Assembly: GCA_965235115.1 (NCBI GenBank)
Contig: OZ249437.1
Coordinates: forward strand, 16,492,001-16,556,000
Reading direction: 5' to 3'
DNA: 64,000 nucleotides
From: Laetmonice hystrix
Lineage: Eukaryota
Shown: in pieces, positions 1 to 21,800 of the stretch
Layout: the number at the start of each line of letters is the position of its first letter
Numbering within the stretch: the first letter of the stretch is position 1
Program-made: the position numbers and the translations under genes
Notes under the pieces: model-generated
The model's input: only the letters and a program-made list of their open reading frames with translations
Database searches by the model: none
Told to the model about the DNA's origin: nothing

Positions 1-823
1 GAGAAGCTACTTCTTGTGACGTACTCCCTGAGCCGTGGTGTCCACTTGTCAACACCACGGCTGAGTGCCAGCCGATATCAACTACATTGTACTGCTGGCC
101 AGTGCGCTATCTATTTGCACATCTGAGACTCTGGAATCATTACATTTTAACACGTTTCAAATGGCCAGCCAAGATGGTCAACTTGCAACATTAAAAATAA
201 ACTGGATTTACTATTAAGTTGAACTTTTAACACGTCAAAATCACAATAAATCGATAATCTCTGCAGGCCTATAATCTCTAGTAATAACGTCCTGACCAGA
301 AACCCGGAAACAAAAGTCTTGGTTAGCTTGATTTTCTTGACATTCCGGCCAAAAGTGTAGATCCCGTTTGGAAATCTATCATAATATTTTTCAATGGATC
401 AAGTTTAGGACGTTTACATGCCACTTGTCTTTTGGCACGCTCAAGTCTATCTCAGGTTAGTCTACCAAGTTACGTCCCGCAGTTTCAAACCTTACGGCCA
501 CGGTCAAAGTTTTTCAACTATCATTGGGCTCACTCAATCAAATAGACCTGAACATAGAAGATTTCGTGAAGAAACGAAACTGTATAAACTTCAGCAATGG
601 CAATATCTATCCAGCTGCTCTACAGCAGGCAAACATAAAATAAATTAAATTAGTCTTCTTATTTTTGCTAAACTTGAAATGGTTAAAACAATAAATGCAC
701 ATTTTATCAAATGAAACCTTCTTGAAATGTATCTAAAATACAAAAATGATTAGAAGGTTATGAACTACTTCACTCCTTTTACATACTTTTGGTCAGCCTA
801 TTTGTATATCTACAGTTAATCAT

Positions 824-3800
824 TCACGACTGGTCACTGTAATCATCCTTAGTATGGACATCCCGCCTGCCACCCTTTCTGGCCTCCACACCATGCAGGC
901 CAAAACTCTGAAAATAAAGTTTGAAACAAGTTCAACATTCTACATAATATTAACATTAACCTACAAAATACACACGTTATGTTTCATATCTTTAACCTAG
1001 CTCATTTTTCGCTTTTTAATACTCTTTCCTGATCATTGACGGTCAACATTTATTCATAGACGTTTTAAGTAAAATCTCACATTCCTTTCAGTGACCCGAA
1101 TCAAAATGTTACTCACCCAATGGCCCGAATCAAATGGTGACCCAGTCGGTTGACCTGGAGGGTGACCCTTCCGAAGTTGACCAAGTGCTGCAGGGTCAAG
1201 CACACCAAATATCACATCAATATTTCACGTAGTCATCTCAAATCAATAAGGCAGTTTCTCATGAGTAAACAAAAGTTTTGACAGAGACTACAATCTGACA
1301 CTACAGACGGCCGGCATTATATTTGGTAGATGATTGCCTTACCTGTGTCCTGTCTATTGGCCCGGCGCTGTTCAAGATGTTGTAAAGCTTGCAGGCACTC
1401 CATGTAGTTAGCCCGACAAGTGTGATCTCCACATGGGACAGGGTAACGGGTATCCTGGATACGATAGCATCATTTTTCACTCAAACATCAGATACAGTGG
1501 ACAGGTTTTAGGAGAACATTCAAACTTAAGACAGGAGTCATTGGTTGCTATAACGGCTGCTGTACATGTTGTATTCACAATACCATATATGGAATCATTA
1601 AAAAGGCAGCTATAATCATGAGGATTTTTTATGTATTGGTTTAGAAAAAGTACTCACTTCACATGGACCTCTGAAGTTACTCCCTACACATTTTCCGACA
1701 ATGTTGATACCATAAGCCACCCTGTAAAGAAATGTTGAATTTAATTTACTTATGTCATATAGTTTCACTAATTATTAGGCCTTGTCAAATTTTCTATACT
1801 AGAATATGTACCCTGGTAGCTGAAATGTAAAATAATTTATGAATGGACTGAACCAACCATAGTAGGCATGAAAATATAGAATTATGCTTTAATAATAAAT
1901 CTTCAATTACTTTGCATTGCTCTTGCAGTGACCAAAATCCTGTACTGTGCGTTCGTAGTTGAGCAGCATAAAAATGACCTAAAAAGAGAGAAGACTTGTA
2001 ACCTTGCCATAGAATTTTTAGCTCGAATTCTTAAAGTACATATTTCGACCGAATGACAAGGTCAATAAACAATATCCAGTAAATCTGTACTAACTTCAAT
2101 GATTTCACATTATTGGCTACCTTTGAAATATTAAGATCACGACCCTTCTATTTTCATAGTTTAATTTTACTTGATACCTGAAATGCTGCTGGTGCAATCT
2201 TGTTGAATGTAAAGTCTTTACTGTCATAGTCAATGTAAGCAAGTTTGCCGGCATCAAACACTGAAAAGCAGAAGTGAAATCGTTGAAACTTTTCAACATG
2301 CTGTTCATGCTAGTTTAAAATGCAAAGAGAAATGTCATTAGGAAAAATCAGCAATCCATGAGACCTCTCATGGATATTACTAAACTGTCTGGGATTAAGT
2401 TTTACAGATTTCTTCAAAGGATTTTTATTCAAGCCTTGGCCCAACTGAACCATCTATTGAATCCTACATGTAAAAAGGTGTACAGTATTTTGCTGGAGAA
2501 CCTTACCTATGTTCCAGGGGGCCATATCCTCATACAGCGGCAGCTGGAGGAACTTGTCATAGAGACGAGACTTGATTTCCTCCAGTAGGCCCATACGCAG
2601 GAGTGCAATCAGTGTCACCACTGTAATAGTCAATCACCTGTAGCTTCAGTTGCCAGGCTATGGACAGATGGGTTGTGTCATGACTTAACTTAGTGGAGCC
2701 CTTTTCCTGGAACTTTACGATTTTTTTCCAGGACCACATGACACAATGTTCAGCTTTCCTTCCATTTTTTCTTATCATGGGATATCAACAATGATTAAAG
2801 AACGGTACCCTGACTGTGAATCAGCCACCTGGAATCCGAGTCTATTCATCAAATTACTGGACTTTTCTCAGACTTAAGCACATACATATGTACGGTTTTT
2901 ATAACATTCTCAGACTTTTGCTGGCGCAGGAGGTCCCCATATAAAATTACAGTACTTTCCCCTGTTTCCCGGACCTGTGGGAACCATGAATATATTCTCT
3001 AGCAAGGCTATTGCACCAGAGAAAGGGACTGCGGGACAAAGGAGAAAGGGACAAATTTTTCCACAAGAGAACTTATTCTGGCTATCCATGTGACAAATGC
3101 TACCTTCCTCAGGTTTGAAGACCTAAACTGTTCTGATGTTCCTGACTAGTCAGAATGTAATCCAAGTTACTGGTATACCCCCTTACAAGTACAAGCCTGT
3201 CATTGCCACCACAGCTTACCATGCAGCTGGCCATACGGTATGCGGTAACCATCTTTTTGACGCACCAACCACACCTCAAAGTTAGAGCTATTGTGGGTCA
3301 CACAGTGCAGGGTATACTTCCGTAAGTGACCATCCAACTCGTAGTCAAAATGATGGTCCACCTGCAACAACAGACGTGACTGCTAATAAATTCAGTTTGA
3401 CTTATAGTGCTGCCCATCTCCACAGTAATGTGACATCATTATTCACATTACCAATGGTGATGCTGAAATCAAAATCTACACATTTAAAACTTTTTTTCTG
3501 TAATATGAGGTCTCTTATTTTCTTTAGCACTTTAGCTATACCACATTTCTACTGATTGCGAACTTACAGAAGTAGAATCCTTCTGGGAATCTATGTCTAA
3601 GATTTTATAGATAGAACATAAAGCATAACTTACCTCTACAGTTAAATTTTGTACATCAACTCTGACAAGTTTCCATGGCAACTGACCACCATTTGGAAGA
3701 GGCAGTGGAGGGATTATGGTGGTCGTGATGTTGATGTTAGCGTCAGCCTTGGCACTCTGTGGGTTAAAACAACAACATTGACAGACACAGAGCGTTGGAC

Positions 3801-6800
3801 ACTACCACTGCAGCAGTGTATTCATTATGGTAAGTTTCTGGACATTCCAGGTAAAGTTGATGTTAGCGTCAGCCTTGGCACTCTGTGGGTCAAAACAACA
3901 ACATTGACAGACACAGTGTTGGACACTATCACTGCAGCAGTGTATTTAAAATGATAAGTTTCCTGACATACATGTACCAGGTACCAAACCAAACAAACCC
4001 CAAAATGATCATATATCAATCTAAAAGGAAGCAACTATTGTGCCAAGGCTGTTTTCAATAATCCCACTCAAAACTGGGTGTAAAAGCCAGTCCCTATAAA
4101 GGGACTCATTTTTTAGAGAAGCACACATTCTGAAATACACCGTTACTGATTGTTTCACTGTACCTACCTCTCCAATGAGGCGTTTCTCAGTGTGATGATA
4201 AACTGGAAATGGGTGCTCACTTAGTCCATAGACCTGACAGTGTAAGAACAATAGCAATCTTAGAGTGTAAGAACAATACATGTATCAACCAGATTGTACA
4301 CTTTGAGAGCCTAAAGATCACAAGAGAAAAATGAACCAATATGGTGGATTCTCAGCCACTTCAATAAGCTCTGCTTAGCTTAAAGCTTGCTGCTTAGAGC
4401 CTTTCTGAAACTGGGCCCAGAACAAGAGGATCTCACCTGTTTAAAGATGTTTAGTCCTGGGAATGGCATGCCAGAGTACGCCCAGGGAAAGAATGTTGTC
4501 ATAGCAACAGACATCATCTGGAATCAAGTCCATTAAATTATGTAATGGATCAAGCCGACTACTGAATATAATCTGCAATAATCAAGTCACTGTCTTTGAC
4601 TTATTCTTGAGTGGCGAATTAATAGGTCAAACCTGATCTGAGGGCAGCTGTACAAAAGTTGTGACCCCAGAGGCCAGGGTCTGACCCATCATGAGGTCAA
4701 ACTGACGGCGGGAGCCCAGCGAAGTCAGCATGTGTAGGAACCCGTCATAGCCTGGAACGAGACCACACTGAGGACTAAGTAAGCAGTAAGAAATCAAACC
4801 TGTTTATGGAGAAACTTTCTACAAGGTTAGGTAGGATAAAGCTACTCAATAATATCTACATTAAAATTAAGCCCCCCCCTCCAGAAGTTTTAATGTTACA
4901 GAAGAATCTCAAGAACAACCGTCTCACCAATGAGCTGGTATCTTAGGAAGTCTGGGCTCTTCAGGAGTTTTCCCGAGAACCGTTCATTGAGTCTCAGATT
5001 AGTGACGGCGATGTTGTCGAGCTTGGACTCCTGCATCTGCCTGTACAAACGGCCTGCTTTCTCTCGGTCATCATGCACCAGTGCCACCAATGTGCTGTTG
5101 GGGAACTTCTGCCCCACCTCCTGGAGGATGTGGCCGTTACTGGAGTAGTACTCGAAGAAGGAGAATGGCTCTGATTCCAGCTCGTCCACCAGGACTTGTA
5201 ATGTGGCCTGGAGGACCAACAGTCAGAAACCAGGTCAAGGTCGCCTGACTGTACTCTCAAGGTCAAGACTGGGATATATATACTAAGGTCTGTTCAGTCT
5301 AAGAAGGCCCCTAACATTTACAGCGAGAGGTGTGACCTATAGGCTACACGAGCAGCCCTATAACAATAAAGATATTTGACAACCTAATTCACATCCATTT
5401 AATGGTGGCAAAGAAACCATTTTTTTCATCAGTATGCAGGCACCCTAGATTTTAAGTCAAGGTATATGACAGACCTGAGAATTGTATTTCTTCTCATCAT
5501 CATCATCTGTCGACACAATGCTGTGATTGTCATCATGTGACAAAAGGGATCGGTACATGAGCATACCATTTACCCAGACTATGTGCACGGGGCACATGTC
5601 CGAATACAGGGGCAGTCGCAGGTAGGACAAAAAAAGTCGGGCTCTACAAACAAAAGTTACAGGACATGCGTTAGAATCCATCCATAGATCTCAAAGTTGT
5701 CACACTGATACAATTTCTATTTAAGCATATCACAACTGTCTGTAAAGATGATTCATTATGAGTGGTTGAGTTTTGTCCTTAAATAGATTTTATTGCTTAA
5801 CTCAAACTTATTCTTACTACCAGTAAAGCCTGCTGTACACTTTCCCGATTTTACCAGAGCAAATTGTAACCGATTCGAAAAATAAATTGGGCAACCAAGC
5901 AGCTGGGTGCAGATAACCAAAATCGGACTATGTGTACTTGTTTCCCGATTACGGTCGACTGTTGTAGGCTCTCCTGGCCACTCACACTGCATGGATTGGA
6001 AGCCAATAATCGCGACAGTGTACGGGGGAGTGTATGGCGGTCACTTGGGAGTCGGGAGTCAGGCAAAGTCGTGACAGTGTACCGGCTTAACTCCAGGTAT
6101 TTCTCACAAGCTTGTCCAGGGCACAAAGATACCACTTACCTTTCCTTTGGTTGTGTCTCCAAGCCGATCTCAAGTAAGGTGTTGAGACTGAATCCCACTA
6201 GGCCGTGACCTAGCCTCACCTCTGTCTCCGTCATCTCATCCCTGAGCTGAACAGATCCATCCGGGCGTAAATTCAGGAGGGACAACTCTGGTGTACACTC
6301 CACTTGCACCTGGGGTTATAGCAACCAGTGTACATTTTAATTCCAGGCCCAAGTTAGTACTCCGTGTCTGATATTTTATAAAGGCCCTGCTAAGGACTTT
6401 TCAAGGATATCAAAGAAGAAGGGTATTGTGCATTAAAGGTATGATATTGACCAAAATTCATTCAATTGGCTTCATATAACCCAGAACTTTGCTGTGACAG
6501 ATTTGTCAAATTTATGAAGACATAAATAAACTACCGCATAGGCTATCAATCACTACTTTAAGTTTAGCTAGAAGTTGTTCAGTAAAATGAAAGCACATTT
6601 AGGTTTTTAAGGGCCTTTTTCAGGGACACTAATTTTTTAAACTTGTAATTGAGGTTTCTAAGCTGTAAGGATAATAATACCTATCCAACCCATAAAGTTT
6701 CACCAACTTACATGTCGCTGAATGGTGTGCAGAACAACCTTGATGACCTTGAGTGTAGAATGACGATCAGTAGGCAGGCTAGTGTCATCTAACAGCGTTA

Positions 6801-9800
6801 CTTCTGAACTCTCGGCACCAACTCGTCGGAGGGCGTCATACACCAGTCCCTGCCAACATTAAACCATCTAGGTGTACATTGATCCCACCACTCACATCAT
6901 TCGTTCTAGATAAATACGAGCCAGGGGCCTGTCTTACTAAACATCGTTATTAACGATAGAGTTAACTGCTGGTAAAGTAGGCCGTCGCCAATGCGACAAC
7001 CAGACAACGTTACAACGTTAGCGGCACCCCCTCCCCAGTCGTTAAGTTAACTAGACCGTTCCCTATACGTTACGCTACTAACTAGACCTTAGTAAGACGG
7101 GTTTTAACCAGCTCTAGTTAATAACGATTTCTAGTTATTAACTAGCTATGAGTTAACCAGATAGGGGTTAACGATATTTAGTAAGACGGGCCCCTGGCCG
7201 GGTTGGTAGTTTTAAAAATTATGTCTATGCATCATCATTTAAATTATGCTGTTGATTGATCAAAATGTAAAACATAATATTCTATTTAACTGGGTTCACT
7301 GCATCACTACATCTTTTCCCCGTGGGATAAGGAAGTTCTCTAGTAGTAAATTTATGTCATAAGTGAAATTTGGGGTCCAGGATCTAGAACAGGGGCGTCA
7401 AGAAACCGGAATCCCAATTATTTCTCATGGAACAATCTACCCACCTTGAAACTGGGGACGAGGCCATGTTGCTGAGACTTTGCCAACATTGTCTGAAGCA
7501 GGCAGAGCATCTGAGGGTCAGGCACCTGCAGGAATGTTGTCGTTGCCATTGACAACAGCTTGCCTAGATACAGGGTGAAACTGGCTTTCAACTGTAGCAA
7601 CCACTGGAAAACTTCAAACCCCAGGACCTGTTGACAGTCAACCATAGCAGTCAATCAATACATCAATATTGCAATCATTCTGATCGAGAGTCAAACAGGG
7701 AATCAATCAATCAAGGCATCATTGTCTTGATCAATCAATTCTGCAATATTCCAATGATTCTGGGAGTCAAACAAGGCATCAGACAATCAATCATAGTAAA
7801 TCAAGGCATCAATTCAATCAAGGTCTCAATATCTCAATCAATAGGTCAATTAAGGCATCATTATCTCAATCAATCACATTCAATCAAGGCATCACTATAT
7901 CAATTTATCTGCCCTAAGACTCATACTGGAAGTGATCTTTCTACCATCCGGAGACCTGCTTTCACGGACCAATGGTCAGCCATATTCTCACCTGATATCT
8001 GAACATGTCCGGGCTACGCGTCAGGTCATCGACCAGGGTGGGGCTAAGGTCTCCGAGAAGCAGTAGTGCCCTCCTTGTTCCCACACTCTCCATCACCCGC
8101 CTGCAGACAAAGTAGTAAGAAAACTACTATCTTTCTCCACTGACATCAACAACTCTCAAGAGACAAAGGTTTTCGTTGCAGACTAAGAAAACTACCAGCT
8201 TTCTCCTACAACTCTCAAGAGACAAAGGTTTTCGTTGCAGACTAAGAAAACTACCAGCTTTCTCCCACTGACATCAACAACTCTCTGTAAATAAAGCTAT
8301 TCATTGTCATCACATGAACTGTATTTACAGGATTGATGTGCCCAGACAATGCAGTAACCATAGAATTGGACAGAAGTACGTTGGGCAGAGAGAATATGGT
8401 CAGATAGCATAATGCATTACTCCATCCACTGAGGGTGATGGTTTATCAAATGAAACTGACCACAGGGCAGAATTCTTCTTTAATCTGGATTATCTTTACC
8501 CTTATATTGTAGATATACTACATAATCTTACCCTGGAATGAAAATGTACAGGGCATGCTATTTTACCAAGGAAGGAGTTCAGAGTACAACTGTGGGTCTA
8601 TGAAACATGATCGTTCACAAGGCTAAGTGTAAAACAATTGACAATATGACTACTGCAAGAATAACATACTTTGAAGGAATAATGATACCAAAAAAACAAC
8701 AAAGAATTGGAACATGCAAAGAGACAATTTCATATATTACAACACAAATATCCTATCTAACTATTTATTTGAAAACAGCCTTTATTGGTAGTTGACTCCA
8801 CAGATCATTGATCATTTGCCTTAAACCAAACGGCAGAAAATCCTCTCCCCTCCAGTTTTCTCCCCTTCTTTTTTTTTAACTTTTAATTTAATTATAGGCA
8901 TTGGTCAAAAAGCTGACGTGACGAGTGTGTAATGAATCAACAACCTTGTGACTCTGTCTGGAGTCTACTGGAGGAATGCGTGGGAATAATGAAGTATATG
9001 GACATTGACTGTTTACCACTAGAATGACAACAGCAATCTTATCACATTCCACCATACAACTGGCAGGATTCTGGGTACAGAGTCTGAGCTTCCCCTACAA
9101 CTTTTTCCTCTTTCAAGGAATAAAATGGGGAGAAATGTGGAAACATTTCCGGAAATGCTCAAAATGTGTTAAGTAGAGGAAGCTCTAATATTAAAAAAAA
9201 AAATCAAATGCAGAGGTCCAGGGGGGAAGGTCTTGACGGGTCAGCACCTATGTCGGTCGGTGGCTTTCTGATCGGCCATGGGCATCAGACTGAGCACATT
9301 AGCGTTGTGGTAGGTCAGTGCCAACTTCAGGCCTACCAGACTCTGGCTTCGACCTCCTACACAGCCAGAGGTCAACCCAAGGTGAGCAGGAAGCAACAAA
9401 CAGTCAAGGGTTAGTCAGCCATTTTTTCATCCAAACTCTACTTCAGTTTTCTTTGGACACTTAGTGGTTAAAATCACATTGGAGAAACTTATGGGTAAAC
9501 AGATTGATGGTCCCTTACAAGGTTCCCATGCTACATTTAAGCTATTTGAATTATTTTAACTATGAATGATATAATTAAAAAATATTCGATGTTTTACAAT
9601 TGAATCTTCCAATTCTCCAGAGTTTACACAGTATCAATTACAAAACGTTCATTCAAAATTTATTTATTTTTAATTTGATTCATTATAATGAATCACTTTT
9701 TTTTAAAACTTCCTCAGTTAGTTATACCTAAATCAATGAATCTGTCATTTCTGTTCCATTTTATATATCTATCTTTTTAACTGGGCAAATTTCTTTAGTT

Positions 9801-12800
9801 GTGCCTCAGCAAATACCTTGCAAAAGGTAAGTAGGGTGCTGGTGCTCTTACCATATGTGAATACACTGAATGGTTGCTGAAGGACCGCCCTGTCGATGAG
9901 CATTTCTGGCTGTAGGTGGCGCCACAGGTGGTCGTACAGCGCCTCCTCTTTATCAGGTGGTCCAAACCTCTGCGCTTGCCACTGGTCAGACTCTGGGGTG
10001 TTCTACACACACAAAACATCAGCCTTTACCATTAGAATATTACTGAAAATATCCATATGGTATCATAGTCTGTTCGCTTTAAGAAGAGGTCGACCTCGAC
10101 CTTATTAAAGCTCTGACCTGCCCCCCTTCTTCCGCCTACCCACACCACACCTCACAAGTCATCACCGCCTGTCATTCAAGAATATGACCACCACGTGGTT
10201 CTGTATTACCCCAAATGAAATAATAGCTTTAATGAGGTCGAGCTCTTCTTAGAGCGAACAGACTATAGGACAACCATAATTAAAAGAACATTGAATGCCA
10301 AAAACTATTTTAAGTACCAAAGGGACTTACGTCTGGGTTGGTGCTGTCCATATCATCCCCATCATCATCTTCATGTCCTTGACCAACCTTGTTACCTAGG
10401 CAACCATATCAGCAACAAAGATACTTTCACCCTGCTCCAAGGTATATGTATATGAGACCATAATTAGTTTCTATGTGTATACGTGGTTGAGGGGACAACT
10501 TAGGTATGGTGGTACCAAGTACTATTCTTTGTGCATACTACAGACTGCCTACTTCTCTACTGCTTAGCTTCTAGACCTACTTGCTTATGCTGGACGTGGA
10601 TAGTTATACAACAGATATCTAATGAACTTATACTATAACAATAGTGTAAAAACGGGAACCCATTAGGTATGGATGGACACTTTAGATTGCTGGATTTTAC
10701 TTCACTTGATCAAGTAATTTCTTGGACTCTACACACCAAATGTTTTCATGTACCTGCATATAAATTGTGGTTCATTTTTTAGTATTAAACCCCTTTATAC
10801 GTCTCCTAGTATATTTTTCTGTTTATCTTCTCTCTGAATTACAAATTGAGGAATTCTATACAAGGTGATTGCACTTTGAGAGAGTTCTTATGGATGTGTT
10901 TTAGCAGATACTTTACCTCAATTTTTGCCCATTATTAAATTTTCGATCAGAAGAAGGGTGCAGTGACATGGCCATGTAATAACAAGGCCCTACCTTTGGT
11001 AGTTTTCTCTGTGGAAGGTTTGTTGAGTATCTCCACTTTACTAGGCAGAGGTCTTGGGGCCTTTCTACCCTCTAGGCTCATCTTCAACTCTTTGCTAGTA
11101 GTCCCCACTACAGGAGACTTGTGCTGCTCTGCCTCAGCAGCACTTTTCTCTATGCTCTCTTGTTTCTGGGCAGGCCCTAATTGTGCAGCCATGGAAATAT
11201 CAAGGTCAAGGCTGGGGTCAGCACCAATGAAGAGGTCAAGGCCATTTTGTACACAGCATGCTAATTGACGAATTGTTTCACTAAGCACTAGCCTAAGTCC
11301 CACAGAAATGGAGGCAAGCAAATAAACTAGACACAAAACCAGAATTTACAAGTTAATTTTCCACTTACAAGATAGGAGTGGGTGGACCAGTCAACAGAAG
11401 CTTAGGCACTTAGTCAGGTTGGAAGTACTATTGAACAATTAATTTGGATTTCTGACAATTTCAGAAAATAAAAGCCGCATCTGGAGCCTCATCCATATTA
11501 AACAGGATAAAAGGCGTTCAGAAGTACAATTAGCACACAATGTGTGTTGTGTAATCTTTTTGTTTGTCAAGTATTTAGACATGCATTGACTTTGTATAAG
11601 ATACATTGCCATAATTGTGGCAATGAACTCAGCTATAGTCGGACCAATTGAAGCTACGATCTTAGTGAAACAATTCGTGGGGGAAACAGATGAGTTGGTG
11701 ATGAGTTTCCTTACTTTATCTGTCAAAAACAAGGTGACACAATGATGCTGACAGTATTGGTGCAGTGATGGTGCTGGGCTGACAACTAGCACAAACAACT
11801 AATGTGGCTTTGTGCATATAGCCAGATTAAAGTGGAATTTTTAATCCCTCAAACAGTTAGCTTTTATCTTCAGCAACACCATGTTAAAATTTCATGTTTG
11901 AACGATGTGTGAAAGTACAAAAAAATCATTATGGTCATACTTAGGGCAATCCCTATGACTCTCACCTCGCAGATAGCTTCCAGTCCGAACGGAAATGGGA
12001 TGGTCAGTTGTAACTTTATTTTTCTATACTTTCAATCATTGTTGAAACATGAAATTTTAACATGGTGTTGCTAAAGATAAAAGGTAACTTTTTGAAGAAT
12101 TTAACATACTGCTTTAATCTAGCAGTATATAAAACAACATTGATGCTTGTGTACACTTATCCAGCTGCTAACACTGTATACTACACATAATACAATACAC
12201 CATGAAATGACACAGAGGTACTAGTATAGATCTACAAACAATCATTCCAAAACTACATTATTCTTTGTGCTTTCCCCCCTTTTTGATTTGACATTTTACC
12301 ATTCAAGGTTTCAGTAAATGTTCCTCCCAAATTACATTGTGCAGTAAGATTTTTATGTTTGAAAACATACATGGTAAATAGGTGGAAATCTATCATATTT
12401 TCCGGGCCTTAAAATTGGAAAGCTTCTATCCATGCCAAGTTGTGCTATTACCAATTTCCTAAAACATAAGAAATATAAACTAAAAAGTTGAAAAAAATCC
12501 CACATTTTGTTAAAAATAACAATAATTTGATTGTTTGCCTTTCATTCCACAGACTTGATGTAAAATTACCTGTAACTGGGGAACTGATGCCAGATGTGAC
12601 AGGACTCCCAAAGTTCGGCTGGTATCTCTTCTGCATTGTCTTAAATTTATAGACATCTTTGACATTCCGTGGCCTCATAGCAGGTGACTCCACCATCAAC
12701 AGGCGGCGCTGTGAAGATTAGCATAATCTAATGTTACTTTTCCAAGATTACCACCAGAAAAAACACTTTAATAATTTATAAATGAGCCGGATGAAAAATT

Positions 12801-15800
12801 TACAGCTCAAAAAGTCTATGTAGGCTGTAAGTACACAGGATAACTTGTGACAAGGAAATTTTAAATCAATTTGGAATCTCTGGTACTGGCTTACAAGGTT
12901 TGGAAACACTGCAGGAGAGTAAAAACTTCCATGATGTTTTGCAAAGATAAACAGTTCAGTGATAGGTGGAGATACTCACCCGGGTTTGATCAACCCCTTC
13001 CATGGCATCATCAATCACCACCTCCTTCAGTTTCACACCTTCCCCTTGGTCCTCCTCATCTTCCTCCCTCCAGCCGTCCTCCCCTCCCTCCTCCCAGTTA
13101 CCCTGCCCTCCCACCCTGCCCTCCACCTCCTGCGGGTTACTGTTCATGTCCTGTTGTACGACCCCATAGGGTTTCCCACGGTCAGGCCGTAGACCCCCAT
13201 TCCCCCACCTCCTGATGTGACCAACATGCTGTGTGTCAGCCAAGTTTTGCTCCAGAGCCATTCGCTGATCGTATTCCTCATATTCTTCACGGTTCTCCCT
13301 GCCATCGGCTACAGCCAGGTGTTGGCCATTGATGTCCAGATAATCAGCCTCCTCTGGTCGAGTCTCGGCCGCCGGGTTAAAGACAAAAGTCAGAGGTCCA
13401 CCCCTCAGTCCCTTGTTGGCGTCTCTAGACAGGTGGGAATACTTCTGAACCTGTAGCGTGTCATCAGATAAATCGTCAGTCAACAGGGCTGGGTTTTTGT
13501 TGTCATTCAACCTTTTCTCAATCCCCCCATCATCTCTCAGGATCTGTTCAAGTTCTACTTTGTTTGGGGCTGTGAGTGAGGCCAGCGGTCGAGTCTCAGG
13601 GCCAACCAGAGCTCCATCATTTTTAGGTTTCTGAAATCGTAGAACAGTGTCCTTCTTCTGGTTGTCTTTGTCCTTGACCTGACCTTTGGATCCACCTTTG
13701 TTTATCGACACCAATGTTTTTGATTGTCTCCTGGACTCAGCGAGGTATTGGGAAATGGTGTTCTTGTGTCTGTTAGCAGTCCGTCTCCCTGCTGCCTTGC
13801 CATTTGCAACATTCATCTTTTGACGACCCAACATTTTCCCCATCTCCTTCAAGTCGCTCTCTCCATGTAAGAATCCCATAGCTCGTCTCACTTCCTTCTC
13901 ATCTCGCCTCAAAATGGCGTCATTGTTGGTCCTTGGGAGTGAGGCCTGGTGACTGTCGTCCTGGTCCCCGTCCCGCTGCTCGCGTTCCCACCCACGGTCA
14001 AACCTGGCCAGTTCCTGGTTGGCCTGCACCAGGAGGGGGTCGCTGCCATGGAGACCGTCGATGTTCTCACGGTCCCAGTGTTTACCCATGGACTGAAACT
14101 GTTGGTCATCCCTCTGGACGGCTGTCGGCGAGTCACCCTCCACTCGGATCCACTGCTGAGCGACACCATCCACCTGAGAGTTGGCCACCGTCGCATGGCC
14201 CTGGTTACTTGGTTTGGCTGCGTTGTCAGCCCTCTCTGTTGCTGTCGTTGATCGAGGGATAGAGTTAGCAATAATGGGTGAAAGTCTGTGTCGGGTGTTT
14301 TTCTGCCAGAGTGTCATGTCACGTGGATCAACACCGACTGGTTTGGGTAACACCCGTCCAATATGTTGAGTAGGCTTTACGTGGTCAGTCAAACGTTTGT
14401 TATAAGTAGTCTGTATCTTGTCATGGTGATCCTACAAATATATCACACCTTCAGTTCAGATTCCCGAGTTGAGGGACACAAGACTTCTAGACATTTGTCT
14501 ATAAAAACATACTTTGGGAACCTTTTCCCACTCGCCTCAGAATTTCAAAAGACAGTGATGAATAATGCAAGGCTTTTAAGCATCAATGGCACAGTACTCC
14601 TATCTGTGTTTTCTCTGTGTAATTACTAGTACTCTGCCATTCTTAGTCTAGCTGGCTCTTCATGTTCACAAACTAACCTTGTCAAATTCTTGAGTAGTCT
14701 TATGTTTTTCATCTCCAAATATCTGTTGAACTTGCTGATGCACCAAGCTGGCTTCACCATATGGATCGAGGGCCACATCGTCTTCCTGAACACATAAAAT
14801 AAATATATAAATCAGATGATTTCTCAGACTGACCTAAAATAATTACTTCGAGAAGAAAACTAGCATTGCAAAAAAATTCTAAATATATGTGTCCACATCG
14901 ACCAGATTGCTACCATCTTAAGTAGATTGTAGTAATGGCTACTGACCCCCAGAGTTCTGATTGTGATACTGGGTCCCATGGCAACCAGTGACCTCAGGTT
15001 AGTCTGGGGAGTGTAGGGAAGTTGTAGGCCTGCCACCAAGATCTTACGGTATGTCTCATCTGTCGCTCCTAGAACATAAAAACTTACTGAGAGAATTTCA
15101 TTACCCATGTCATCCCATCTACCTAACATCTAATATTATTAGTAAAAGAAATCCTCGATAATTATGAAAGTCAGATGCCGGCTAATACTGGGTTGATTTT
15201 TATCTTAACGAAGTGCTCTGCTTTGATGCGGTATGACTGACCAAGGCTATGTATAAAGCTGTAAGATCATGTACGTAAGCAAATGTGGGGCAACTAATAG
15301 TACAACTATCCGTTTGCTTGGACCTCCACCTAAATTTTTCATTATATTTCACACGTGAACATATACCATGAAAACCCGTCAAAAAAAGCAACCTTTATGG
15401 CATTTCAACATGAACTTAAGCCTAGTCCACAGTCGATGTAACCAACAGTACTGACCTAGTTTCACAAGTATGTCGAGTGGTACAGAGTTAACGTCAACTG
15501 GTGCTGCCATCTCTGTGTCATCTGTGAAGATCATCGTAAAGTTTGGCATCTGTTTCCCAAACTCTAACACACACTGAAGATATAACAATAACATTGCTGT
15601 AGCAATGCAGCTTGCTACAAGAGAATCACCTGACTTGGAATAAGACACAGGCAAATGTCTTTGTTTTTATTCACCAGCTTCTTTTCACTAATATCTCAAA
15701 ATCAACCCCCATGATTCTGATACTCAGCGCCGGAAAAATTTCTGGGACTTTCTTCGAGAACCTTTCAAGGATTTTAATCTTAACCATGGCCACATTTGGG

Positions 15801-18604
15801 ACTAGTGGTGAATTATGAACAATAACTACACAAGGAGTCTCGAGAAGAGATTTCTGCTGCCAGTGAGATTCTGTATTTGCTACTGATTTCATGCCATGAA
15901 CTGTTTTCTGATTTCCTGATGCCATGAGAACCATACCTTACCTGAGTGTGAGCTCGTAACACATCACACAGTGCGTCAGGCAGCTGTCGTTGGCCACGGT
16001 TGACCACCACCTTGACCACAGCCTCTGAGTTCCAACCCTGCTGAAGGGTGCCCACTGACCGCAGCACTCCATGGTTGATCGCCTGTATGCTGCAGTCCAA
16101 ACTGGCCATCTGGCAAGACTTTCGTACCAGCTCACCCACTGAATCCCAGTTCTGCTCAAAGAAATCCTTTGAAAAAAAGCAAATACAAAAATACACCTAT
16201 AAGGCAAAAAAAAAAGTTCCCGGTTTTTGATAGGAAGCAAAAGTGGTGCGGTGATGCAGGGTTGTTTTTTTAATAATTTTTTGGAGGGATACAGGTGGCT
16301 ACAAGAATTATCATGTAAAATGTGTCCATAAACAAGGACCATTACTTTGGCTGTCATCACTTTGAATACAGCACACTCCCATTGCAGTGTTAATGAAATT
16401 TCCATTACAGCAATAGTTAGTTTCTAGCCTTACCGCTAGGTGGCAGCACTATTCACACATTCATGCTACGTGAGGGCAAGAAAAAAAGCACTGATGCACT
16501 GCTTTTTGGGCCAAAGGTCATTTCTTTAAAAATAAAACTACCACGGTATTAAAAGATAGCAAAGCACCAAGCTGGCAATAACAAAAAGATGGGTAGATGG
16601 AAGAGTCTAAGGACGGACCCGTACTTACAAGATGTCTGCCCTCAATCTTTTCAGCAATAATAAATGTTTGTGTTGCTATGGCAATGAGGCGAGCAAGGAG
16701 TTCCTCAAACTCGTGAGGAAGCAGGGAACCAAGCAATGACTTCAGTTTTGTCAGCACCATGTTTCCAAACATCACCTGGAAAGGACCACGACAAAGTCCC
16801 CTTTTTACAATCCCAGCCTGTTCAAGACTGACACAGCTGAGATTGGTTATGCAATTACACACAAGTATAACAGTGAAGTTATCCTACTTCTAAACAACAC
16901 ACAGATTTTGGAATTTTTCTCATTTTCAAACGGCATACTTTCCATTTTTCAAGGCTTAGACTTTTTCAGTCTGGAATTCCATCATTGCCCTGTTTCCCAC
17001 TTGTTGGGGTTTTAGTGAACAATTTCAACTGATCAGTGTGGTTATAATTTCATATCCAAAAACCATACTTGTTGGTCCAGGTAGAGGGTTTCTGCCAGAG
17101 CGGGAATCTCTTCAGCGTCCACTCTCCCGACATAGAGATTTCCCAGCCCCTCCTTGTGAGCCGTCTGCCAGACATACTTGACAAATTCATCTGCCAGCAA
17201 TCAAAACATGCAGTCAGTATTAATATAACCTTGTAACACATGACAGTGGAATATCATCATTATCATTTATATGCCACTCTTTTTTTATCATCAAACTCCT
17301 TCATTACTTTGCTGTGTTCCAGTGATAAGACTGACTGCAGTGATGCTCGGGTGTCTGCTGGCAATGTGGGCAACTGTTGTTCCAGTCCCGACCTCAATCA
17401 CACTGCCCTGGGTCAGTAAGGTTTCTATTCTGTCTGCGTGATGTGAATACTGCGAGCCACCACCAGGGTCATAGCTGATCTCTGCAAACAAAGAGTTCAA
17501 TGTGTGTTAACAAATCCACGGTATGGCCTAATTTGACAAACTTCTTGGCAGAAGATTTAAGAATTCCTTCCTAGGTCTCACCAGTTTCAGGAAGTGTGCC
17601 TTTATTTGCAGCTGCCCAGAGTCGATTCATGAGGAAAACTCTGCCAGACACGTGACTTGCCTGCTTGTCCCACTGCAGCATGGCAACACAAAATTTATCA
17701 AAAACTGAGCACGATACAGTTATGACATTAGATTATATACCTTTTAAAATATATAAATCTTAACAGTTTTACCAATTTGCATCACACATAATGAACCAGA
17801 ATGTTAAAAAAATGCTTCATAGGCCTACTGGCACGGTCGCAGTATTAAATGGAAAATCTGTCAATTTGAAAGAACGTAATCTACTTAAAGCGACAGTCTC
17901 GTCCTTCAGCATTGTGCGATAGGCTGGCCATCCTAACGGTCGATGTGCTATTTGTAGATTTGATAGTACAGTAAACCTCGCATGGTCTAATTACGGACGA
18001 GACTGCCGCTTTAATGTTTGGGAATACCACAAAAGCACAAAGCACAAAAGCACATGTGTAAATTGTAATCAAAGACTGGCTTCTGCAAACCGCAATTTTA
18101 AAAACCCCTGATCCTGAATAAGTATCAATGAAAATGGGCAGTGAGCATGCTCATCACATCAGTCAATGGCTTGCCTAAAATAATCACCATTTCTTTCCTC
18201 TGTTCAGACATCTCATTGTCTTTCTTCAACTTTGAGACCAAGTCATCAAATTCTATCAGACTTCCATTGCCATGGTATCCTGACTCTCTGCCACTAACCA
18301 CCGTCGTATAAAAGTCGGTGTATCGCTGGAAGTCCAGCAGTTTGTCTGGTCCCTCGCCACCTCTTGTTATCCAGGGTCGATCCCGTGACCTCTTGACCCC
18401 ACCGCCACCGTTTTTCTGGGATCCCAGTCTCCAAGCCTGCAGGCGTTCAGCATCCTGGTGGCTAATACTAGCAAATGACTGTCTTCCAACATTATGTGTT
18501 TTTACAGTTCCATATTTGAGATGCCCCTTGTCCTCCTGAAGGAGCTCTTGTGAATGTGTAATGAGAATTAACAGTGAAAATACATTACACACTGTGTGTT
18601 TCAT
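824..18604 (-). CDS. Uncharacterised ~1960-aa secretory-pathway protein with three tandem methyltransferase-like + kinase-like (WbdD-like) modules and a Cys-rich C-terminus; 33 exons
   Basis: Hand-spliced exons, all GT-AG and phase-consistent (minus strand, 5' to 3'): 18604-18188, 17672-17582, 17481-17308, 17190-17069, 16775-16629, 16166-15942, 15573-15456, 15068-14947, 14785-14678, 14431-12980, 12708-12570, 11260-10994 (least certain, weak acceptor), 10395-10331, 10002-9852, 9356-9248, 8100-7992, 7627-7445, 6849-6712, 6309-6140, 5643-5475, 5207-4928, 4751-4633, 4517-4437, 4233-4168, 3756-3634, 3361-3220, 2620-2507, 2260-2178, 1978-1911, 1721-1658, 1454-1343, 1187-1117, 907-824 (TGA at 826-824). 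Total 5883 nt with no internal stop. N-terminus MKHTVCNVFSLLILITHSQ is signal-peptide-like. MTase-like segments: VIEVGTG...GLGNLYVGRVDAEEI; FSVFTYGGG...KLALTYHNANVLSL...FRYQVLG; FSFFEYYSSNG...KFPNSTLVAL...FLRYQLIG. Kinase-like segment LQLPLYEDMAPWNIVFDAGKLAYIDYD. Confidence 0.8.
3730..3970. repeat. Tandem duplication of a ~125-bp unit spanning an exon acceptor
   Basis: GTTGATGTTAGCGTCAGCCTTGGCACTCTGTGGGT...CACTGCAGCAGTGTATT occurs at 3730 and again at 3856. Confidence 0.9.
5827..6087. mobile_element. Harbinger/Tourist-like MITE
   Basis: TAA flanks at 5824-5826 and 6088-6090; imperfect TIRs AGCC..GTACACT; repeated TCG(C/T)GACAGTGTAC inside. Confidence 0.45.
6925..7193. mobile_element. Harbinger-like MITE
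   Basis: TIRs GGGCCTGTCTTACTAAACATCGTTA / TAACGATATTTAGTAAGACGGGCCC, flanked by CAG and CTG (CWG type). Confidence 0.7.
7637..7900. repeat. Degenerate (TCAA)n / AATC-rich microsatellite region
   Basis: Many CAATCAAT and TCAAGGCATC units in the intron next to exon 7627-7445. Confidence 0.75.
8102..8285. repeat. Short tandem duplication (~60-70-bp unit, 2-3 copies)
   Basis: CAACTCTCAAGAGACAAAGGTTTTCGTTGCAGACTAAGAAAACTACCAGCTTTCTCC is repeated. Confidence 0.8.
11841..12104. mobile_element. MITE-like fold-back element with ~65-bp inverted repeats
   Basis: CTTTTATCTTCAGCAACACCATGTTAAAATTTCATGTTT (left) versus AAACATGAAATTTTAACATGGTGTTGCTAAAGATAAAAG (right); TTAA at both outer ends. Confidence 0.65.
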
Positions 18605-18845
18605 CTTGCCAAAGATCAACCAGCTGAGAACCCGACTTCCGCGCCATCTGGTGAGAGACTCGCCGGAAATAGATCAGAGATCCTACTTTTTTAAATTAGT
18701 ATCACTAATAATCATAAATATACTTACATCCTTTATAATATTTTTCAAAATCTCTATAATAAACCTTTATTGAAATAATGACATCAACCCACAGATCAAA
18801 ACTCGTACACGTCGACTTCCGGTCTTGCCGAAAGCTGAAAACAAC
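18605..18845. promoter_or_regulatory. Bidirectional promoter / 5' UTRs shared by the MTase-kinase gene and HM13
   Basis: 241 bp between divergent ATGs. ETS-type cores ACTTCCG (18635), CCGGAAAT (18663) and ACTTCCGG (18815); CTCF-like GCGCCATCTGGTG (18641). Confidence 0.7.
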
Positions 18846-21800
18846 ATGGCGGAATTGAATGAAACTCTGGCGGCTGCCCTCAATGAATCGGCGCAGAATG
18901 CCACAGGAAAGCGTCCTTCGACTCCAGAGGGGATGGCCGTGGCGTACGGGAGTCTTGTTATCATGGCTCTCCTTCCGATATTCTTTGGTTCCTTCAGATC
19001 CGTGAGATATCAAAAGGAGCAGAAGGTGAGTGGAAGCCGGTGGGTCGAGTCCGTGCTGTGTCGGCCCGGTGAGGGTTGGGGGAGGGGGGGGGGGCTGGAG
19101 ACTGAACTGAGAGATTCACTTAGAATGGTTTTTGAAATGAATAACAGGACTGTCACAAAGTCGCTATTGTCCTTTGAATCAAAATATGGGGACACTGCAT
19201 TTAATATGTTTTCCATGTCCTGGAACAACATTTATGTTAGCTAGATAATCGTGCTAGAAACCCAGTGAAACGTGAAGGGCCACAACAGTCAACATGGTGG
19301 TGGTTGCCATATGGCACCGTATGGACAAATTTCTAGCAATATCTAGACCCAATTTACAGCCAGTCCATGAAAGTGATTTCACAAATAAGAAATATTTCCA
19401 AGGTGTAGCAAGCAGTTCTAAAACCTGCCCTGGTAATACCAATAGTCTACAGTATCGTTATGGTGCATGCAAGATTCTTAAAAATAAGAGTCGCAAACAA
19501 AAGTTTCCCAAATTATTTTCTCGCAAAGATAATATTTAAATTTATTTTTGATGTAAACCAGTGAAAGCAGATTTTTTGATTGTAGTTGAGCAGCTCTACT
19601 CGTGATAATTTTATCCTTTATGTAGTCAAGTTGACCAGCATGCAGTCTGAGAAGTCTTCATATTCATATATTGCAGTGATAAAACAGACAGAATATCAAG
19701 AATGGGAAGAATTTCACCAAATTTAATGTAACATCACATATATTTTCTGTAGCTTTTTCAAGAGAAATATGTTTGTTAACATCATTCATAATGTCAGTCG
19801 GCCATCCATCAACCCTTCCACAGTATTACTCTTAGATAAAAATGGTATGGCTTTTCCATTGGAAGAACAGGCAGCCAATAGAATGTTCTAAATATTGCTT
19901 TGTTCCAGGCGTCAGGGGAAAAACCAGAGACAATGTCAAACAAGGATGCAGCAATGTTTCCATTAATAGCCAGTGTTACACTATTTGGGATTTACATATT
20001 CTTCCAGGTCAGAATTTTAATTGGTAACCGTTATGATAAATTTGCCTAATTATAATCAGATACAAAGTATTTACTTAATCATGTTCTTATGGTTTTTGTA
20101 TTCATACTCATAGTCAGGAGTAAGTTATGGCTAATTAGTGATTTTATCAAGTGTAATGCATTCAAATTGAATTGAAATGTAAATATTTGACAGAGTGTTG
20201 ATTATGTATGTATTCTCTAAAAACTTTTTGGTGTGAGATCCGACAGATGTGCTTTAGAGTTTTAACCCTATCAATGTGTGTCTACTCTTACATTTTCAGC
20301 TGTTCTCCAAAGAGTACATAAATCTACTCCTGACTGTGTACTTCTTTTTCCTTGGTGTGCTTGCTTTAGCCCACATTATGAGGTATGTAGCAGTGAACTA
20401 CATTGGCTCTAAACCTTCAACAATTTGGATCGAATCCAAAGGAGTTATGTATTTCTCAAGTCTATCAGAAAATGTATTTATGCCATTTATAAGATAAATA
20501 GGACAGGCTCTAGACTGTGTCTCATGTATGTTCTCCACCGTTAACATTGCAGCCCTTTGGTTAACAAGCTCTTGCCAGACGCATTCCCAAATTCTCCCTA
20601 CCATCTGATCCTAACCGAGGGCAAGGATGAAAAGAAAGAGGGTACGTTTATTGCTATCACTGAATTGCTGTGTTTGCCTGGTCAATCCCAATATATGTTG
20701 TACTTCAGAATAAAAAAAATGAAGTTATACATATCAGTTAAATTTTAGTCAAGTTTTACATTTCATCTTGTTTCAGATTTGATGAACTATGAGTTTGATA
20801 GAAGAGACTTGGTGTGCCTTGCACTGTGTACAGTTGTAGGAGTCTGGTATCTCATGAAAAAGGTAATTATTGGCTGAGCTGCATTGTAACTGGTATTTTC
20901 TACATGTAGATAATTACAGGTCAGATCATTAAGTGATCCTAAGAATCTTTTAACATATACATTTGATGAGAGGATGAGATATGTTATGCAAGTCTTTACA
21001 AGCCAGAAAATTAAAAATGTATTTTAAAATTATTTTAGTCTGTTGTGTTGTTAATATTCCTTTGCCAACTTCCAGCACTGGGTGGCCAACAATCTGTTTG
21101 GTCTAGCTTTTGCTGTAAATGGTGTCGAGTTGCTTCAATTGAATCGTGTCTCAACAGGCTGCATTCTGTTGTGTGGTCTCTTCATCTATGACATCTTCTG
21201 GGTAGGTATCTGGGATACAATGATGTTCTCTTGTCATTCTACTCTCAATCTATCTCAGGTCCAAGTCTAGGAAACTACCTGATCATCTCTTGCATTTTAT
21301 AAGCAGTTAGATTTTCTGTAAAAAAAAGAGCAATCCTGTATGGGACATCAGTATGCAAGTCTTTAGTTTGTTCCACTGAAATACTGTTTATGGGGAAAAT
21401 TAACCTTTACCGTCATGGTGTACATATACATTGAAACCAATATGACTCAATAAGAGTACATGTATTTTGTTCTGCTTGGTCTAGGTGTTCGGGACAAATG
21501 TCATGGTGACAGTGGCCAAGTCCTTTGAGGCACCAATCAAGTGTGAGTATGCTAGTAGCTTAATTTTTTTAATTATCTAATTTTACCAGAATTTCTTTTT
21601 CAAGTATGGAGGTAAATGTATTTAAAAATGTTCCCACAATAAAATTAATACTAATGTTATTTAGGAAAACATAAAGAATTTGCATTGGGATAACCTTCTT
21701 CCTTTCTTGTTGTAGTGGTGTTTCCACAGGACCTCTTGGAAAATGGTCTCTCAGCAAACAACTTTGCAATGCTCGGTCTTGGAGACATAGTCATTCCAGG

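Follow-up and report, generated by a model that had tools for sequence, protein, structure and literature searches.

Structure of the gene

The 64,000-nucleotide stretch of Laetmonice hystrix DNA analysed here (contig OZ249437.1 of assembly GCA_965235115.1, positions 16,492,001 to 16,556,000; the window, whose own numbering is used below) carries a 30-exon gene on its minus strand between positions 824 and 18604. The gene is real and single-copy in the 627-Mb assembly. It encodes a protein of three homologous modules that belongs to an unnamed eukaryotic family and may act as a kinase and methyltransferase of the secretory pathway. The gene model comprises 5409 nt and 1802 aa, all its introns are GT-AG, and the only stop is the terminal one. 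The ATG at 18604 and the stop ending at 824 are the limits proposed in a first-pass annotation of this DNA, which compared the modules with the Escherichia coli methyltransferase-kinase WbdD. No long open reading frame (ORF) spans the interval, and minus-strand stop-free segments carry the peptides quoted in that annotation.

The model is homology-guided, from tblastn of homologues and a profile hidden Markov model (HMM) of 12 animal members, with splice pairs chosen junction by junction; the exons at the two ends and around 15.0–14.7 kb are placed by eye. The exon matches are strictly colinear with the family HMM on the minus strand, descending from ~17.6 to 1.3 kb. Between almost all adjacent matches, one GT…AG pair keeps the frame, avoids stops, and gives exactly the spacing expected from the profile. 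The idea of a single spliceable gene that is invisible as one ORF is thereby borne out. The predicted protein is 43% identical to homologues from Lingula (P0042) and Owenia (P0003) over ~790 aa covering modules 2 and 3, and 27–29% identical to them in module 1.

The 33 exons and ~1960 aa given in the first-pass annotation are not reproduced. The only place where ~150 further codons could sit is the 3-kb intron 12979-9970, which is the likely source of the difference in length. When extra exons are sought there, no family HMM match and no convincing coding signal are found; hexamer scores of its open segments are near or below zero, in a self-trained and hence circular and weak measure. The junction 12980 to 9969 itself rests on profile spacing alone (76 residues observed versus 77 expected).

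Transcription and splicing

Four runs of the same sample, none on record as RNA, are compared over positions 1340-7339. Three (X1, X2, and X4) cover the interval continuously and behave as genomic DNA. Run X3 covers exons only, with seven joints that have CT..AC ends (GT..AG on the minus strand), and is treated as RNA-derived because its contigs are spliced. With cut offsets allowed for, the joints 1454/1658, 1721/1911, 1978/2178, 2260/2507, 3361/3634, 3756/4168, and 4751/4928 are exactly the model junctions 27/28, 26/27, 25/26, 24/25, 22/23, 21/22, and 18/19, respectively. At an eighth junction, 28/29, a loose end of X3 at 1343 continues with the nine bases that open exon 29. At least over module 3, then, transcription and splicing of the gene follow the model, which holds against these RNA-like reads at seven junctions exactly and at one by the loose end.

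Three homologous modules

Within the window alone the internal repeat is weak, with BLAST E values of 4e-4 and 2e-4 for two exon pairs. To compare the modules at the level of the family, we run hhalign on alignments of 12 animal homologues cut at the module boundaries. Module 2 aligns with module 3 over 286 columns (probability 99.9%, E 1.2e-32), module 1 with module 3 over 257 columns (98.4%, E 6e-15), and module 1 with module 2 over 256 columns (97.5%, E 6e-12). The proposed internal homology and the register of the kinase-side alignment are thus reproduced on homologue profiles, with …L.LL.LG… and then …LP… of modules 1 and 2 standing opposite TLIALLRMGL…LPLYEDMAPWN of module 3.

The three modules share the order of a methyltransferase-like part followed by a kinase-like part, as had been proposed, but an intact catalytic motif is confined to module 3. 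Module 1 combines a methyltransferase-like part, in which the E-V-G-T-G loop is intact, with a degenerate kinase-like part (SVPLDILVKLG…YRKILVAGLQLPY). Module 2 combines a methyltransferase-like part (FSVFTYGG) with a pseudokinase-like part (GFSLNTLLEIG…LPLYSDMCPVH) that has lost the Asn and the IDYD motif. Both modules end shortly past the catalytic-loop position and are without HHFDY, DGHxRKY, the Asn, and IDYD. Judged from conserved sequence, the presumed active site that is invariant in the family (HHFDY, DGHxRKY, E-D-M-A-P-W-N, and I-D-Y-D) is kept by module 3 alone, and modules 1 and 2 are probably pseudokinase scaffolds or substrate-binding parts. Invariant or near-invariant family residues are retained at 46 of 47 positions in module 3 (the single change being Tyr to Phe), 37 of 41 in module 2, and 18 of 24 in module 1.

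The presumed S-adenosylmethionine (SAM) loop, which is glycine-rich and follows beta1 (motif I, D/E-x-G-x-G-x-G), has a different pattern of retention. It is intact in module 1 (IEVGTGTT), is TYGG in module 2, and is eroded in module 3 (EYYSSNG). The module 3 loop is eroded in most bilaterians; the pattern E-x-x-S-G-x-G is retained there in protists, a sponge, and the brittle star. The family thus displays a tandem triplication with module-specific loss of catalytic motifs.

Table 1 Coordinates of the gene, its modules, and the candidate active-site motifs (window numbering)
Feature	Position	Strand	Remarks
Whole gene	824..18604	-	30 exons, 1802 codons + stop
N-terminal hydrophobic segment, codons 1-19, MKHTVCNVFSLLILITHSQ	18548..18604	-	strongest N-terminal hydropathy
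Module 1, exons 2-9, residues ~150-518	14678..17672	-	HMM matches on exons
Charged linker, exon 10, residues 519-1002, repeated W-[DE]-R-E-like motifs	12980..14431	-	one 484-codon exon
Module 2, exons 11-17, residues 1003-1334	5475..9969	-	hhalign; 5' boundary from homology spacing only
Module 3, methyltransferase-fold half, exons 18-22, residues 1335-1557	3634..5207	-	glycine loop eroded to EYYSSNG
Module 3, kinase-like half, exons 23-28, residues 1558-1752, Cys-rich end	1343..3361	-	junctions 22/23 and 24/25-27/28 in X3
HHFDY…DGHLRKY, residues 1560-1573	3314..3355	-	H, H, H, R, Y invariant in 45 sequences
LPLYEDMAPWN, residues 1631-1641, presumed catalytic loop	2511..2543	-	D-M-A-P-W-N invariant in 45 sequences
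YIDYD, residues 1651-1655, presumed metal-binding Asp (DFG equivalent)	2223..2237	-	Y, D, D invariant
C-terminal tail, exons 29-30, W-S-F-x-x-x-G motif then stop	824..1187	-	motif common to Lingula, Patella, Haliotis tails

Fold and candidate kinase site of module 3

As a proxy for the window protein, module 3 of the Lingula orthologue is modelled with AlphaFold2 from a 45-sequence alignment (mean predicted local distance difference test score 89.9, predicted template-modelling score 0.84). The model contains a Rossmann-like alpha/beta/alpha sandwich with a seven-stranded sheet. A search of all PDB sequences with the module 3 profile (E <= 10) returns only class I methyltransferases, at motif I (E 0.04–1.5), and no kinase. 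On this modelled structure, module 3 has a methyltransferase fold.

When the whole module 3 model is compared with 350,542 PDB chains by Foldseek, WbdD ranks 1, 2, 3, and 5 (E 5e-8 to 4e-7). Its alignments span 396–428 columns, i.e. both domains, and those of plain methyltransferases, which begin at E 2.6e-7, span ~230 columns. The WbdD-like architecture that had been proposed is upheld by this top match and by the methyltransferase-then-kinase order of each module. The template-modelling (TM) score between WbdD and the model is 0.29, with a root-mean-square deviation of ~19 A; the score is low because the relative orientation of the domains differs.

The kinase-like half alone gives weaker matches. 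Foldseek returns nothing with E < 0.28 in the PDB, and in the AFDB clusters only a family member is significant. Among the 50 best matches of a VIA search of the PDB, ~30 are protein kinase (PK)-like kinases, all below significance, including Bud32, PknB, PINK1, Mnk2, CurKC, Rad53, WbdD, MLKL, TBK1, CaMKI, BRAF, and LRRK2, as well as WaaP, AceK, and APH(3'). All of these align on model residues 85–147, which hold the helix preceding the catalytic loop, E-D-M-A-P-W-N, two short strands, and I-D-Y-D. The longest alignment is that of WbdD (92 residues, 39..142 versus 223..374). Weak kinase matches, to the Pkinase, ABC1, APH, RIO, and Kdo families, also occur in the AFDB clusters and the ESM Atlas. 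Pfam searches of 45 kinase-like domains give only scattered single matches and no kinase model.

In WbdD, D351 is essential; W355 forms a stack with Y230 in the G-rich loop, and the two Mg ions are bound by N356 and D369 (PMC3482155). In the first-pass annotation the WbdD catalytic loop was given as HDDVRPWN, of which D350, D351, W355, and N356 are the residues that the published account confirms (PMC3482155). Compared by residue spacing, E1635-D1636-M-A-P-W1640-N1641…D1653 of the window protein has the same register as D350-D351-x-x-x-W355-N356…D369 of WbdD, with an Asn-to-Asp spacing of 12 in module 3 and 13 in WbdD. Extending the VIA alignment ranges would place D369 on the first Asp of IDYD. 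By extrapolation from the same ranges, HHFDY…DGHLRKY would take the place of the nucleotide-binding loop and beta3 and align with the G-rich loop of WbdD near Y230. The invariant Arg of DGHxRKY is the only candidate for the role of the beta3 Lys. A kinase-fold origin of the C-terminal domain is likely in our view, and the chance that the domain is an active kinase is about even.

Family and distribution

A phmmer search with one exon (4899-5222) against 1.84 billion cluster representatives finds only 35 proteins, of which about ten are 1350–1900 aa long. The searches yield 49 and 35 significant homologues; all the named ones are "uncharacterized" or "hypothetical" and are without a Pfam domain. 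In addition, Pfam searches with ten exon translations and five full-length homologues give nothing above threshold. These searches give no characterised animal family as a match.

Members occur among deuterostomes in sea urchins, a brittle star, and hemichordates (Ptychodera, Glandiceps), among other bilaterians in Owenia, Lingula, gastropods, a chiton, and cephalopods, and among sponges in Sycon and Corticium. Unicellular members come from Capsaspora, Salpingoeca, Monosiga, Thecamonas, Tetraparma, and Hanusia, together with many intron-less marine contigs or transcripts. Several of the protist entries are complete TransDecoder ORFs of 1500–1650 aa, indicating that in other organisms too the multi-module protein comes from one transcript. 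Some 19 residues do not vary among animals, choanoflagellates, stramenopiles, and cryptophytes. Sequence comparison indicates that the family is pan-eukaryotic, unnamed, and ancient. The view that it is specific to animals does not survive, since cryptophytes and stramenopiles have members as well as deuterostomes.

The family search matches include none from vertebrates, arthropods, nematodes, fungi, plants, or bacteria. The pattern [YF][EG]DMAPWN, scanned against 185,579 genomes of bacteria and archaea, finds no relative, and when 5.8 billion proteins are searched with a profile for remote or single-module relatives, only strong family members and fragments are recovered. The profile, pattern-scan, and PDB searches thus connect the family by sequence neither to WbdD nor to any bacterium, and the suggested ancient bacterial origin is therefore unsupported. 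Literature searches by the locus tags of homologues, and for WbdD together with eukaryotes and Golgi, retrieve nothing relevant.

N-terminus, linker, and predicted location

Residues 4–16 form the only strongly hydrophobic segment of the N-terminus, and a hydropathy scan of the 1802-aa model finds no transmembrane-like 19-mer elsewhere. A comparable N-terminal segment is present in ~27 of 45 full-length homologues. In four protist homologues (P0075, P0081, P0068, and P0076), hydrophobic segments of 17–22 residues follow a short basic stretch. The protist segments resemble type II signal anchors of Golgi enzymes, and those of animals resemble cleavable signal peptides. The segment of the window protein is a probable signal peptide. 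Cysteines are conserved in modules 1 and 3 across the family, and this would fit a lumenal or extracellular protein. The C-terminus of the model has no KDEL-type ending. A lumenal or secretory-pathway location is plausible, and the N-terminal segments of the homologues make entry into that pathway, as claimed in the first-pass annotation, plausible for the family as a whole.

Exon 10, which separates modules 1 and 2, is rich in D, G, R, E, and Q. Its part 14176-13862 matches residues 349–458 of Lingula P0042 with 38% identity over 118 aa (E 3.5e-13). The conserved stretch holds Trp-acidic-Arg-Glu repeats (…KHWDRE…, …RGWEREQ…) within an otherwise disordered-looking linker, and may be a short functional repeat rather than mere spacer.

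Comparison with known systems

WbdD of E. coli O9a (PDB 4AZS, 4AX8, 4AZT, 4AZW, and 4UW0) is a bifunctional methyltransferase-kinase that caps the polymannose O antigen. Module 3 has the same layout and a similar presumed catalytic-loop motif, a likeness known here at the level of fold and motif. The two proteins have no detectable sequence homology, and the window protein is not a WbdD-family member by sequence. WbdD is cytoplasmic, has a single module, trimerizes through a C-terminal coiled coil, and acts on undecaprenol-linked polymannose. The window protein, in contrast, is eukaryotic, has a signal-type segment at its N-terminus, and has three modules, two of them degenerate, instead of a coiled coil. 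It also differs by its Cys-rich C-terminal part, by HHFDY/DGHxRKY in place of the G-rich loop, and by the absence of an alphaC helix from the model.

A survey of the Legionella kinome describes the bacterial kinase-methyltransferase fusions NoeA/Lani_1194 and Lcin_0519, which it considers only remotely related to WbdD and predicts to decorate secreted factors or lipopolysaccharide (LPS); an Arg is proposed in them for the beta3 Lys, and no alphaC Glu is identifiable (PMC9758233). Two features of module 3, its invariant Arg in DGHxRKY and its lack of an alphaC helix, thus have precedents. Compared by description only, these fusions resemble the window protein in joining an atypical kinase to a class I methyltransferase, and differ in being bacterial, cytoplasmic, and of one module.

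Three further groups of enzymes are compared. With respect to class I SAM-dependent methyltransferases (Rv2258c, UbiG/UbiE, SgvM, and the Hen1 domain), the window protein falls below every Pfam threshold, and their glycine loop is eroded in bilaterian module 3 and in module 2. With respect to minimal or atypical PK-like kinases (Bud32/KEOPS, RIO, WaaP/Kdo, APH, and ABC1), scores are below significance, the N-lobe motifs are unrelated, and there is no Pfam match. The animal secretory-pathway kinases (FAM20A/B/C, FJX1, POMK, PKDCC, and DIPK) are lumenal or secreted PK-like enzymes; FAM20B phosphorylates xylose, and POMK phosphorylates O-mannose. To our knowledge, none of them has a methyltransferase domain or tandem modules. 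The window protein has no Pfam match to FAM20, POMK, PKDCC, or DIPK, and none of the listed kinases, FJX1 included, is among the 50 best matches of the PDB fold searches.

Proposed function

We read the locus as a single-copy expressed gene for a soluble secretory protein with domains in the order of WbdD, which would act as a kinase and methyltransferase on a lumenal or extracellular substrate (probability about 0.5). The kinase-like domain of module 3 would transfer phosphate from ATP to a hydroxyl of that substrate, most plausibly a glycan. A methyltransferase module would next add a methyl group to this phosphate or to a nearby sugar hydroxyl, in the manner of WbdD on polymannose. From motifs, folds, and the comparison with WbdD we infer kinase activity, methyl transfer, and a glycan substrate, the last of which we consider doubtful.

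Several observations weigh against this reading. As to the fold, the structure models are of the Lingula orthologue, which is 43% identical, and not of the window protein. The lead of WbdD over plain methyltransferases in the PDB is small (5e-8 versus 2.6e-7), and with the Swiss-Prot models the 30 best whole-module Foldseek matches are all plain methyltransferases, with WbdD not among them. Neither the profile search of PDB sequences nor Pfam gives a sequence-level link to WbdD or any kinase family. As to the active sites, the model has no alphaC helix and no obvious Lys-Glu pair, and the three invariant His could point to a different chemistry; the module 3 SAM loop is eroded here, and module 1 is without a clear acidic post-I residue. 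As to the substrate, no nematode member is among the family matches although C. elegans has methylated N-glycans.

In one alternative, the protein is only a methyltransferase or SAM-binding scaffold. The conserved C-terminal domain of module 3 would then not be a phosphotransferase but a catalytic domain of another kind, perhaps dependent on metal, or one that binds carbohydrate, and would have no more than a beta-hairpin-helix core in common with kinases. The sub-significant scores of the kinase-like domain alone and the lack of an alphaC helix would be expected, and a metal could be bound by the invariant H, H, H, and D. D-x-D motifs, such as I-D-Y-D here, are also typical of GT-A glycosyltransferases. 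However, the weak matches are overwhelmingly to kinases, at the catalytic-loop region, in three independent libraries. Moreover, the D-x-x-x-W-N…D register matches that of the residues shown by experiment to be essential in WbdD, and the Foldseek alignment with WbdD runs through both domains. We consider this alternative unlikely.

In a second alternative, the protein is an active secretory-pathway kinase and methyltransferase whose substrate is a protein, a lipid, or a small molecule rather than a glycan. FAM20C and PKDCC, which are secreted PK-like enzymes, phosphorylate proteins. The distribution of the family, with no nematode member found, does not obviously track the taxa with methylated glycans. 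On the other hand, WbdD, which acts on a glycan, is the only characterised protein with both a methyltransferase and a kinase that the searches recover, and the Legionella fusions NoeA/Lani_1194 and Lcin_0519 are predicted to decorate secreted factors or LPS (PMC9758233). This reading, of an active enzyme with a non-glycan substrate, is in our estimate improbable. Very unlikely is a structural, adhesive extracellular, or lectin-like protein derived from an ancient enzyme, in which all three modules are catalytically dead: the clear loss of the catalytic motif in modules 1 and 2, the eroded module 3 SAM loop of bilaterians, and the long charged linker would fit it, but the ~19 invariant residues include Asp, Asn, and His at loop positions, and are typical of an active site rather than a scaffold.

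Returning to the kinase-methyltransferase reading, reviews report no sugar methylation from vertebrates and describe the enzymes that methylate glycans in C. elegans as still unidentified (PMC6272458, PMC7614267), in agreement with the statement of the first-pass annotation on lumenal glycan methyltransferases. The family is a concrete candidate for the missing glycan methyltransferases, combining predicted secretory entry, methyltransferase folds, and a conserved kinase-like site. More speculatively, and with rather little likelihood, it could represent a so far missing class of lumenal enzymes that decorate the glycans of invertebrates and protists, a eukaryotic counterpart of WbdD that phosphorylates and methylates a terminal sugar. 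If so, it would produce a methyl-phosphate or O-methyl cap, and the gene would be the first animal gene for glycan methylation or methylphosphorylation. Whatever the substrate, this large ancient eukaryotic family would extend the secretory-pathway kinome by a highly divergent branch. Orthologues are present in tractable systems, namely sea urchin, Capsaspora, and Salpingoeca rosetta.

Other features of the locus

A plus-strand ORF at 18825-19030, which begins MAELNETLAAALNESAQNATGKRPSTPEGMAVAYGSLVIMALLPIFFG, lies ~220 bp from the ATG of the gene and runs in the opposite direction. We take it to resemble the N-terminal end of signal peptide peptidase (HM13). This head-to-head arrangement points to one bidirectional promoter for both and speaks against additional exons of the 824-18604 gene farther upstream.

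Repeats are found in several introns. In intron 14, contigs of X1, X2, and X4 skip 272 bp at 6923-7196; the skipped stretch falls in bins with cover 1,000- to 10,000-fold above the surroundings and is probably a polymorphic insertion of a high-copy repeat. In intron 20, an element of ~50 bp at ~4367-4415 has a word depth of >26,000 in the DNA runs, and many contigs part ways at either end of it, which makes it a fragment of an interspersed repeat with very high copy number. The segments 3535-4034 and 8130-8296 are locally duplicated and carry near-identical minus-strand open-frame peptides (for example, CVCQCCCF.PQSAKADANI twice and VVFLVCNENLCLLRVV twice). They are tandem intronic duplications outside the exons of the model.

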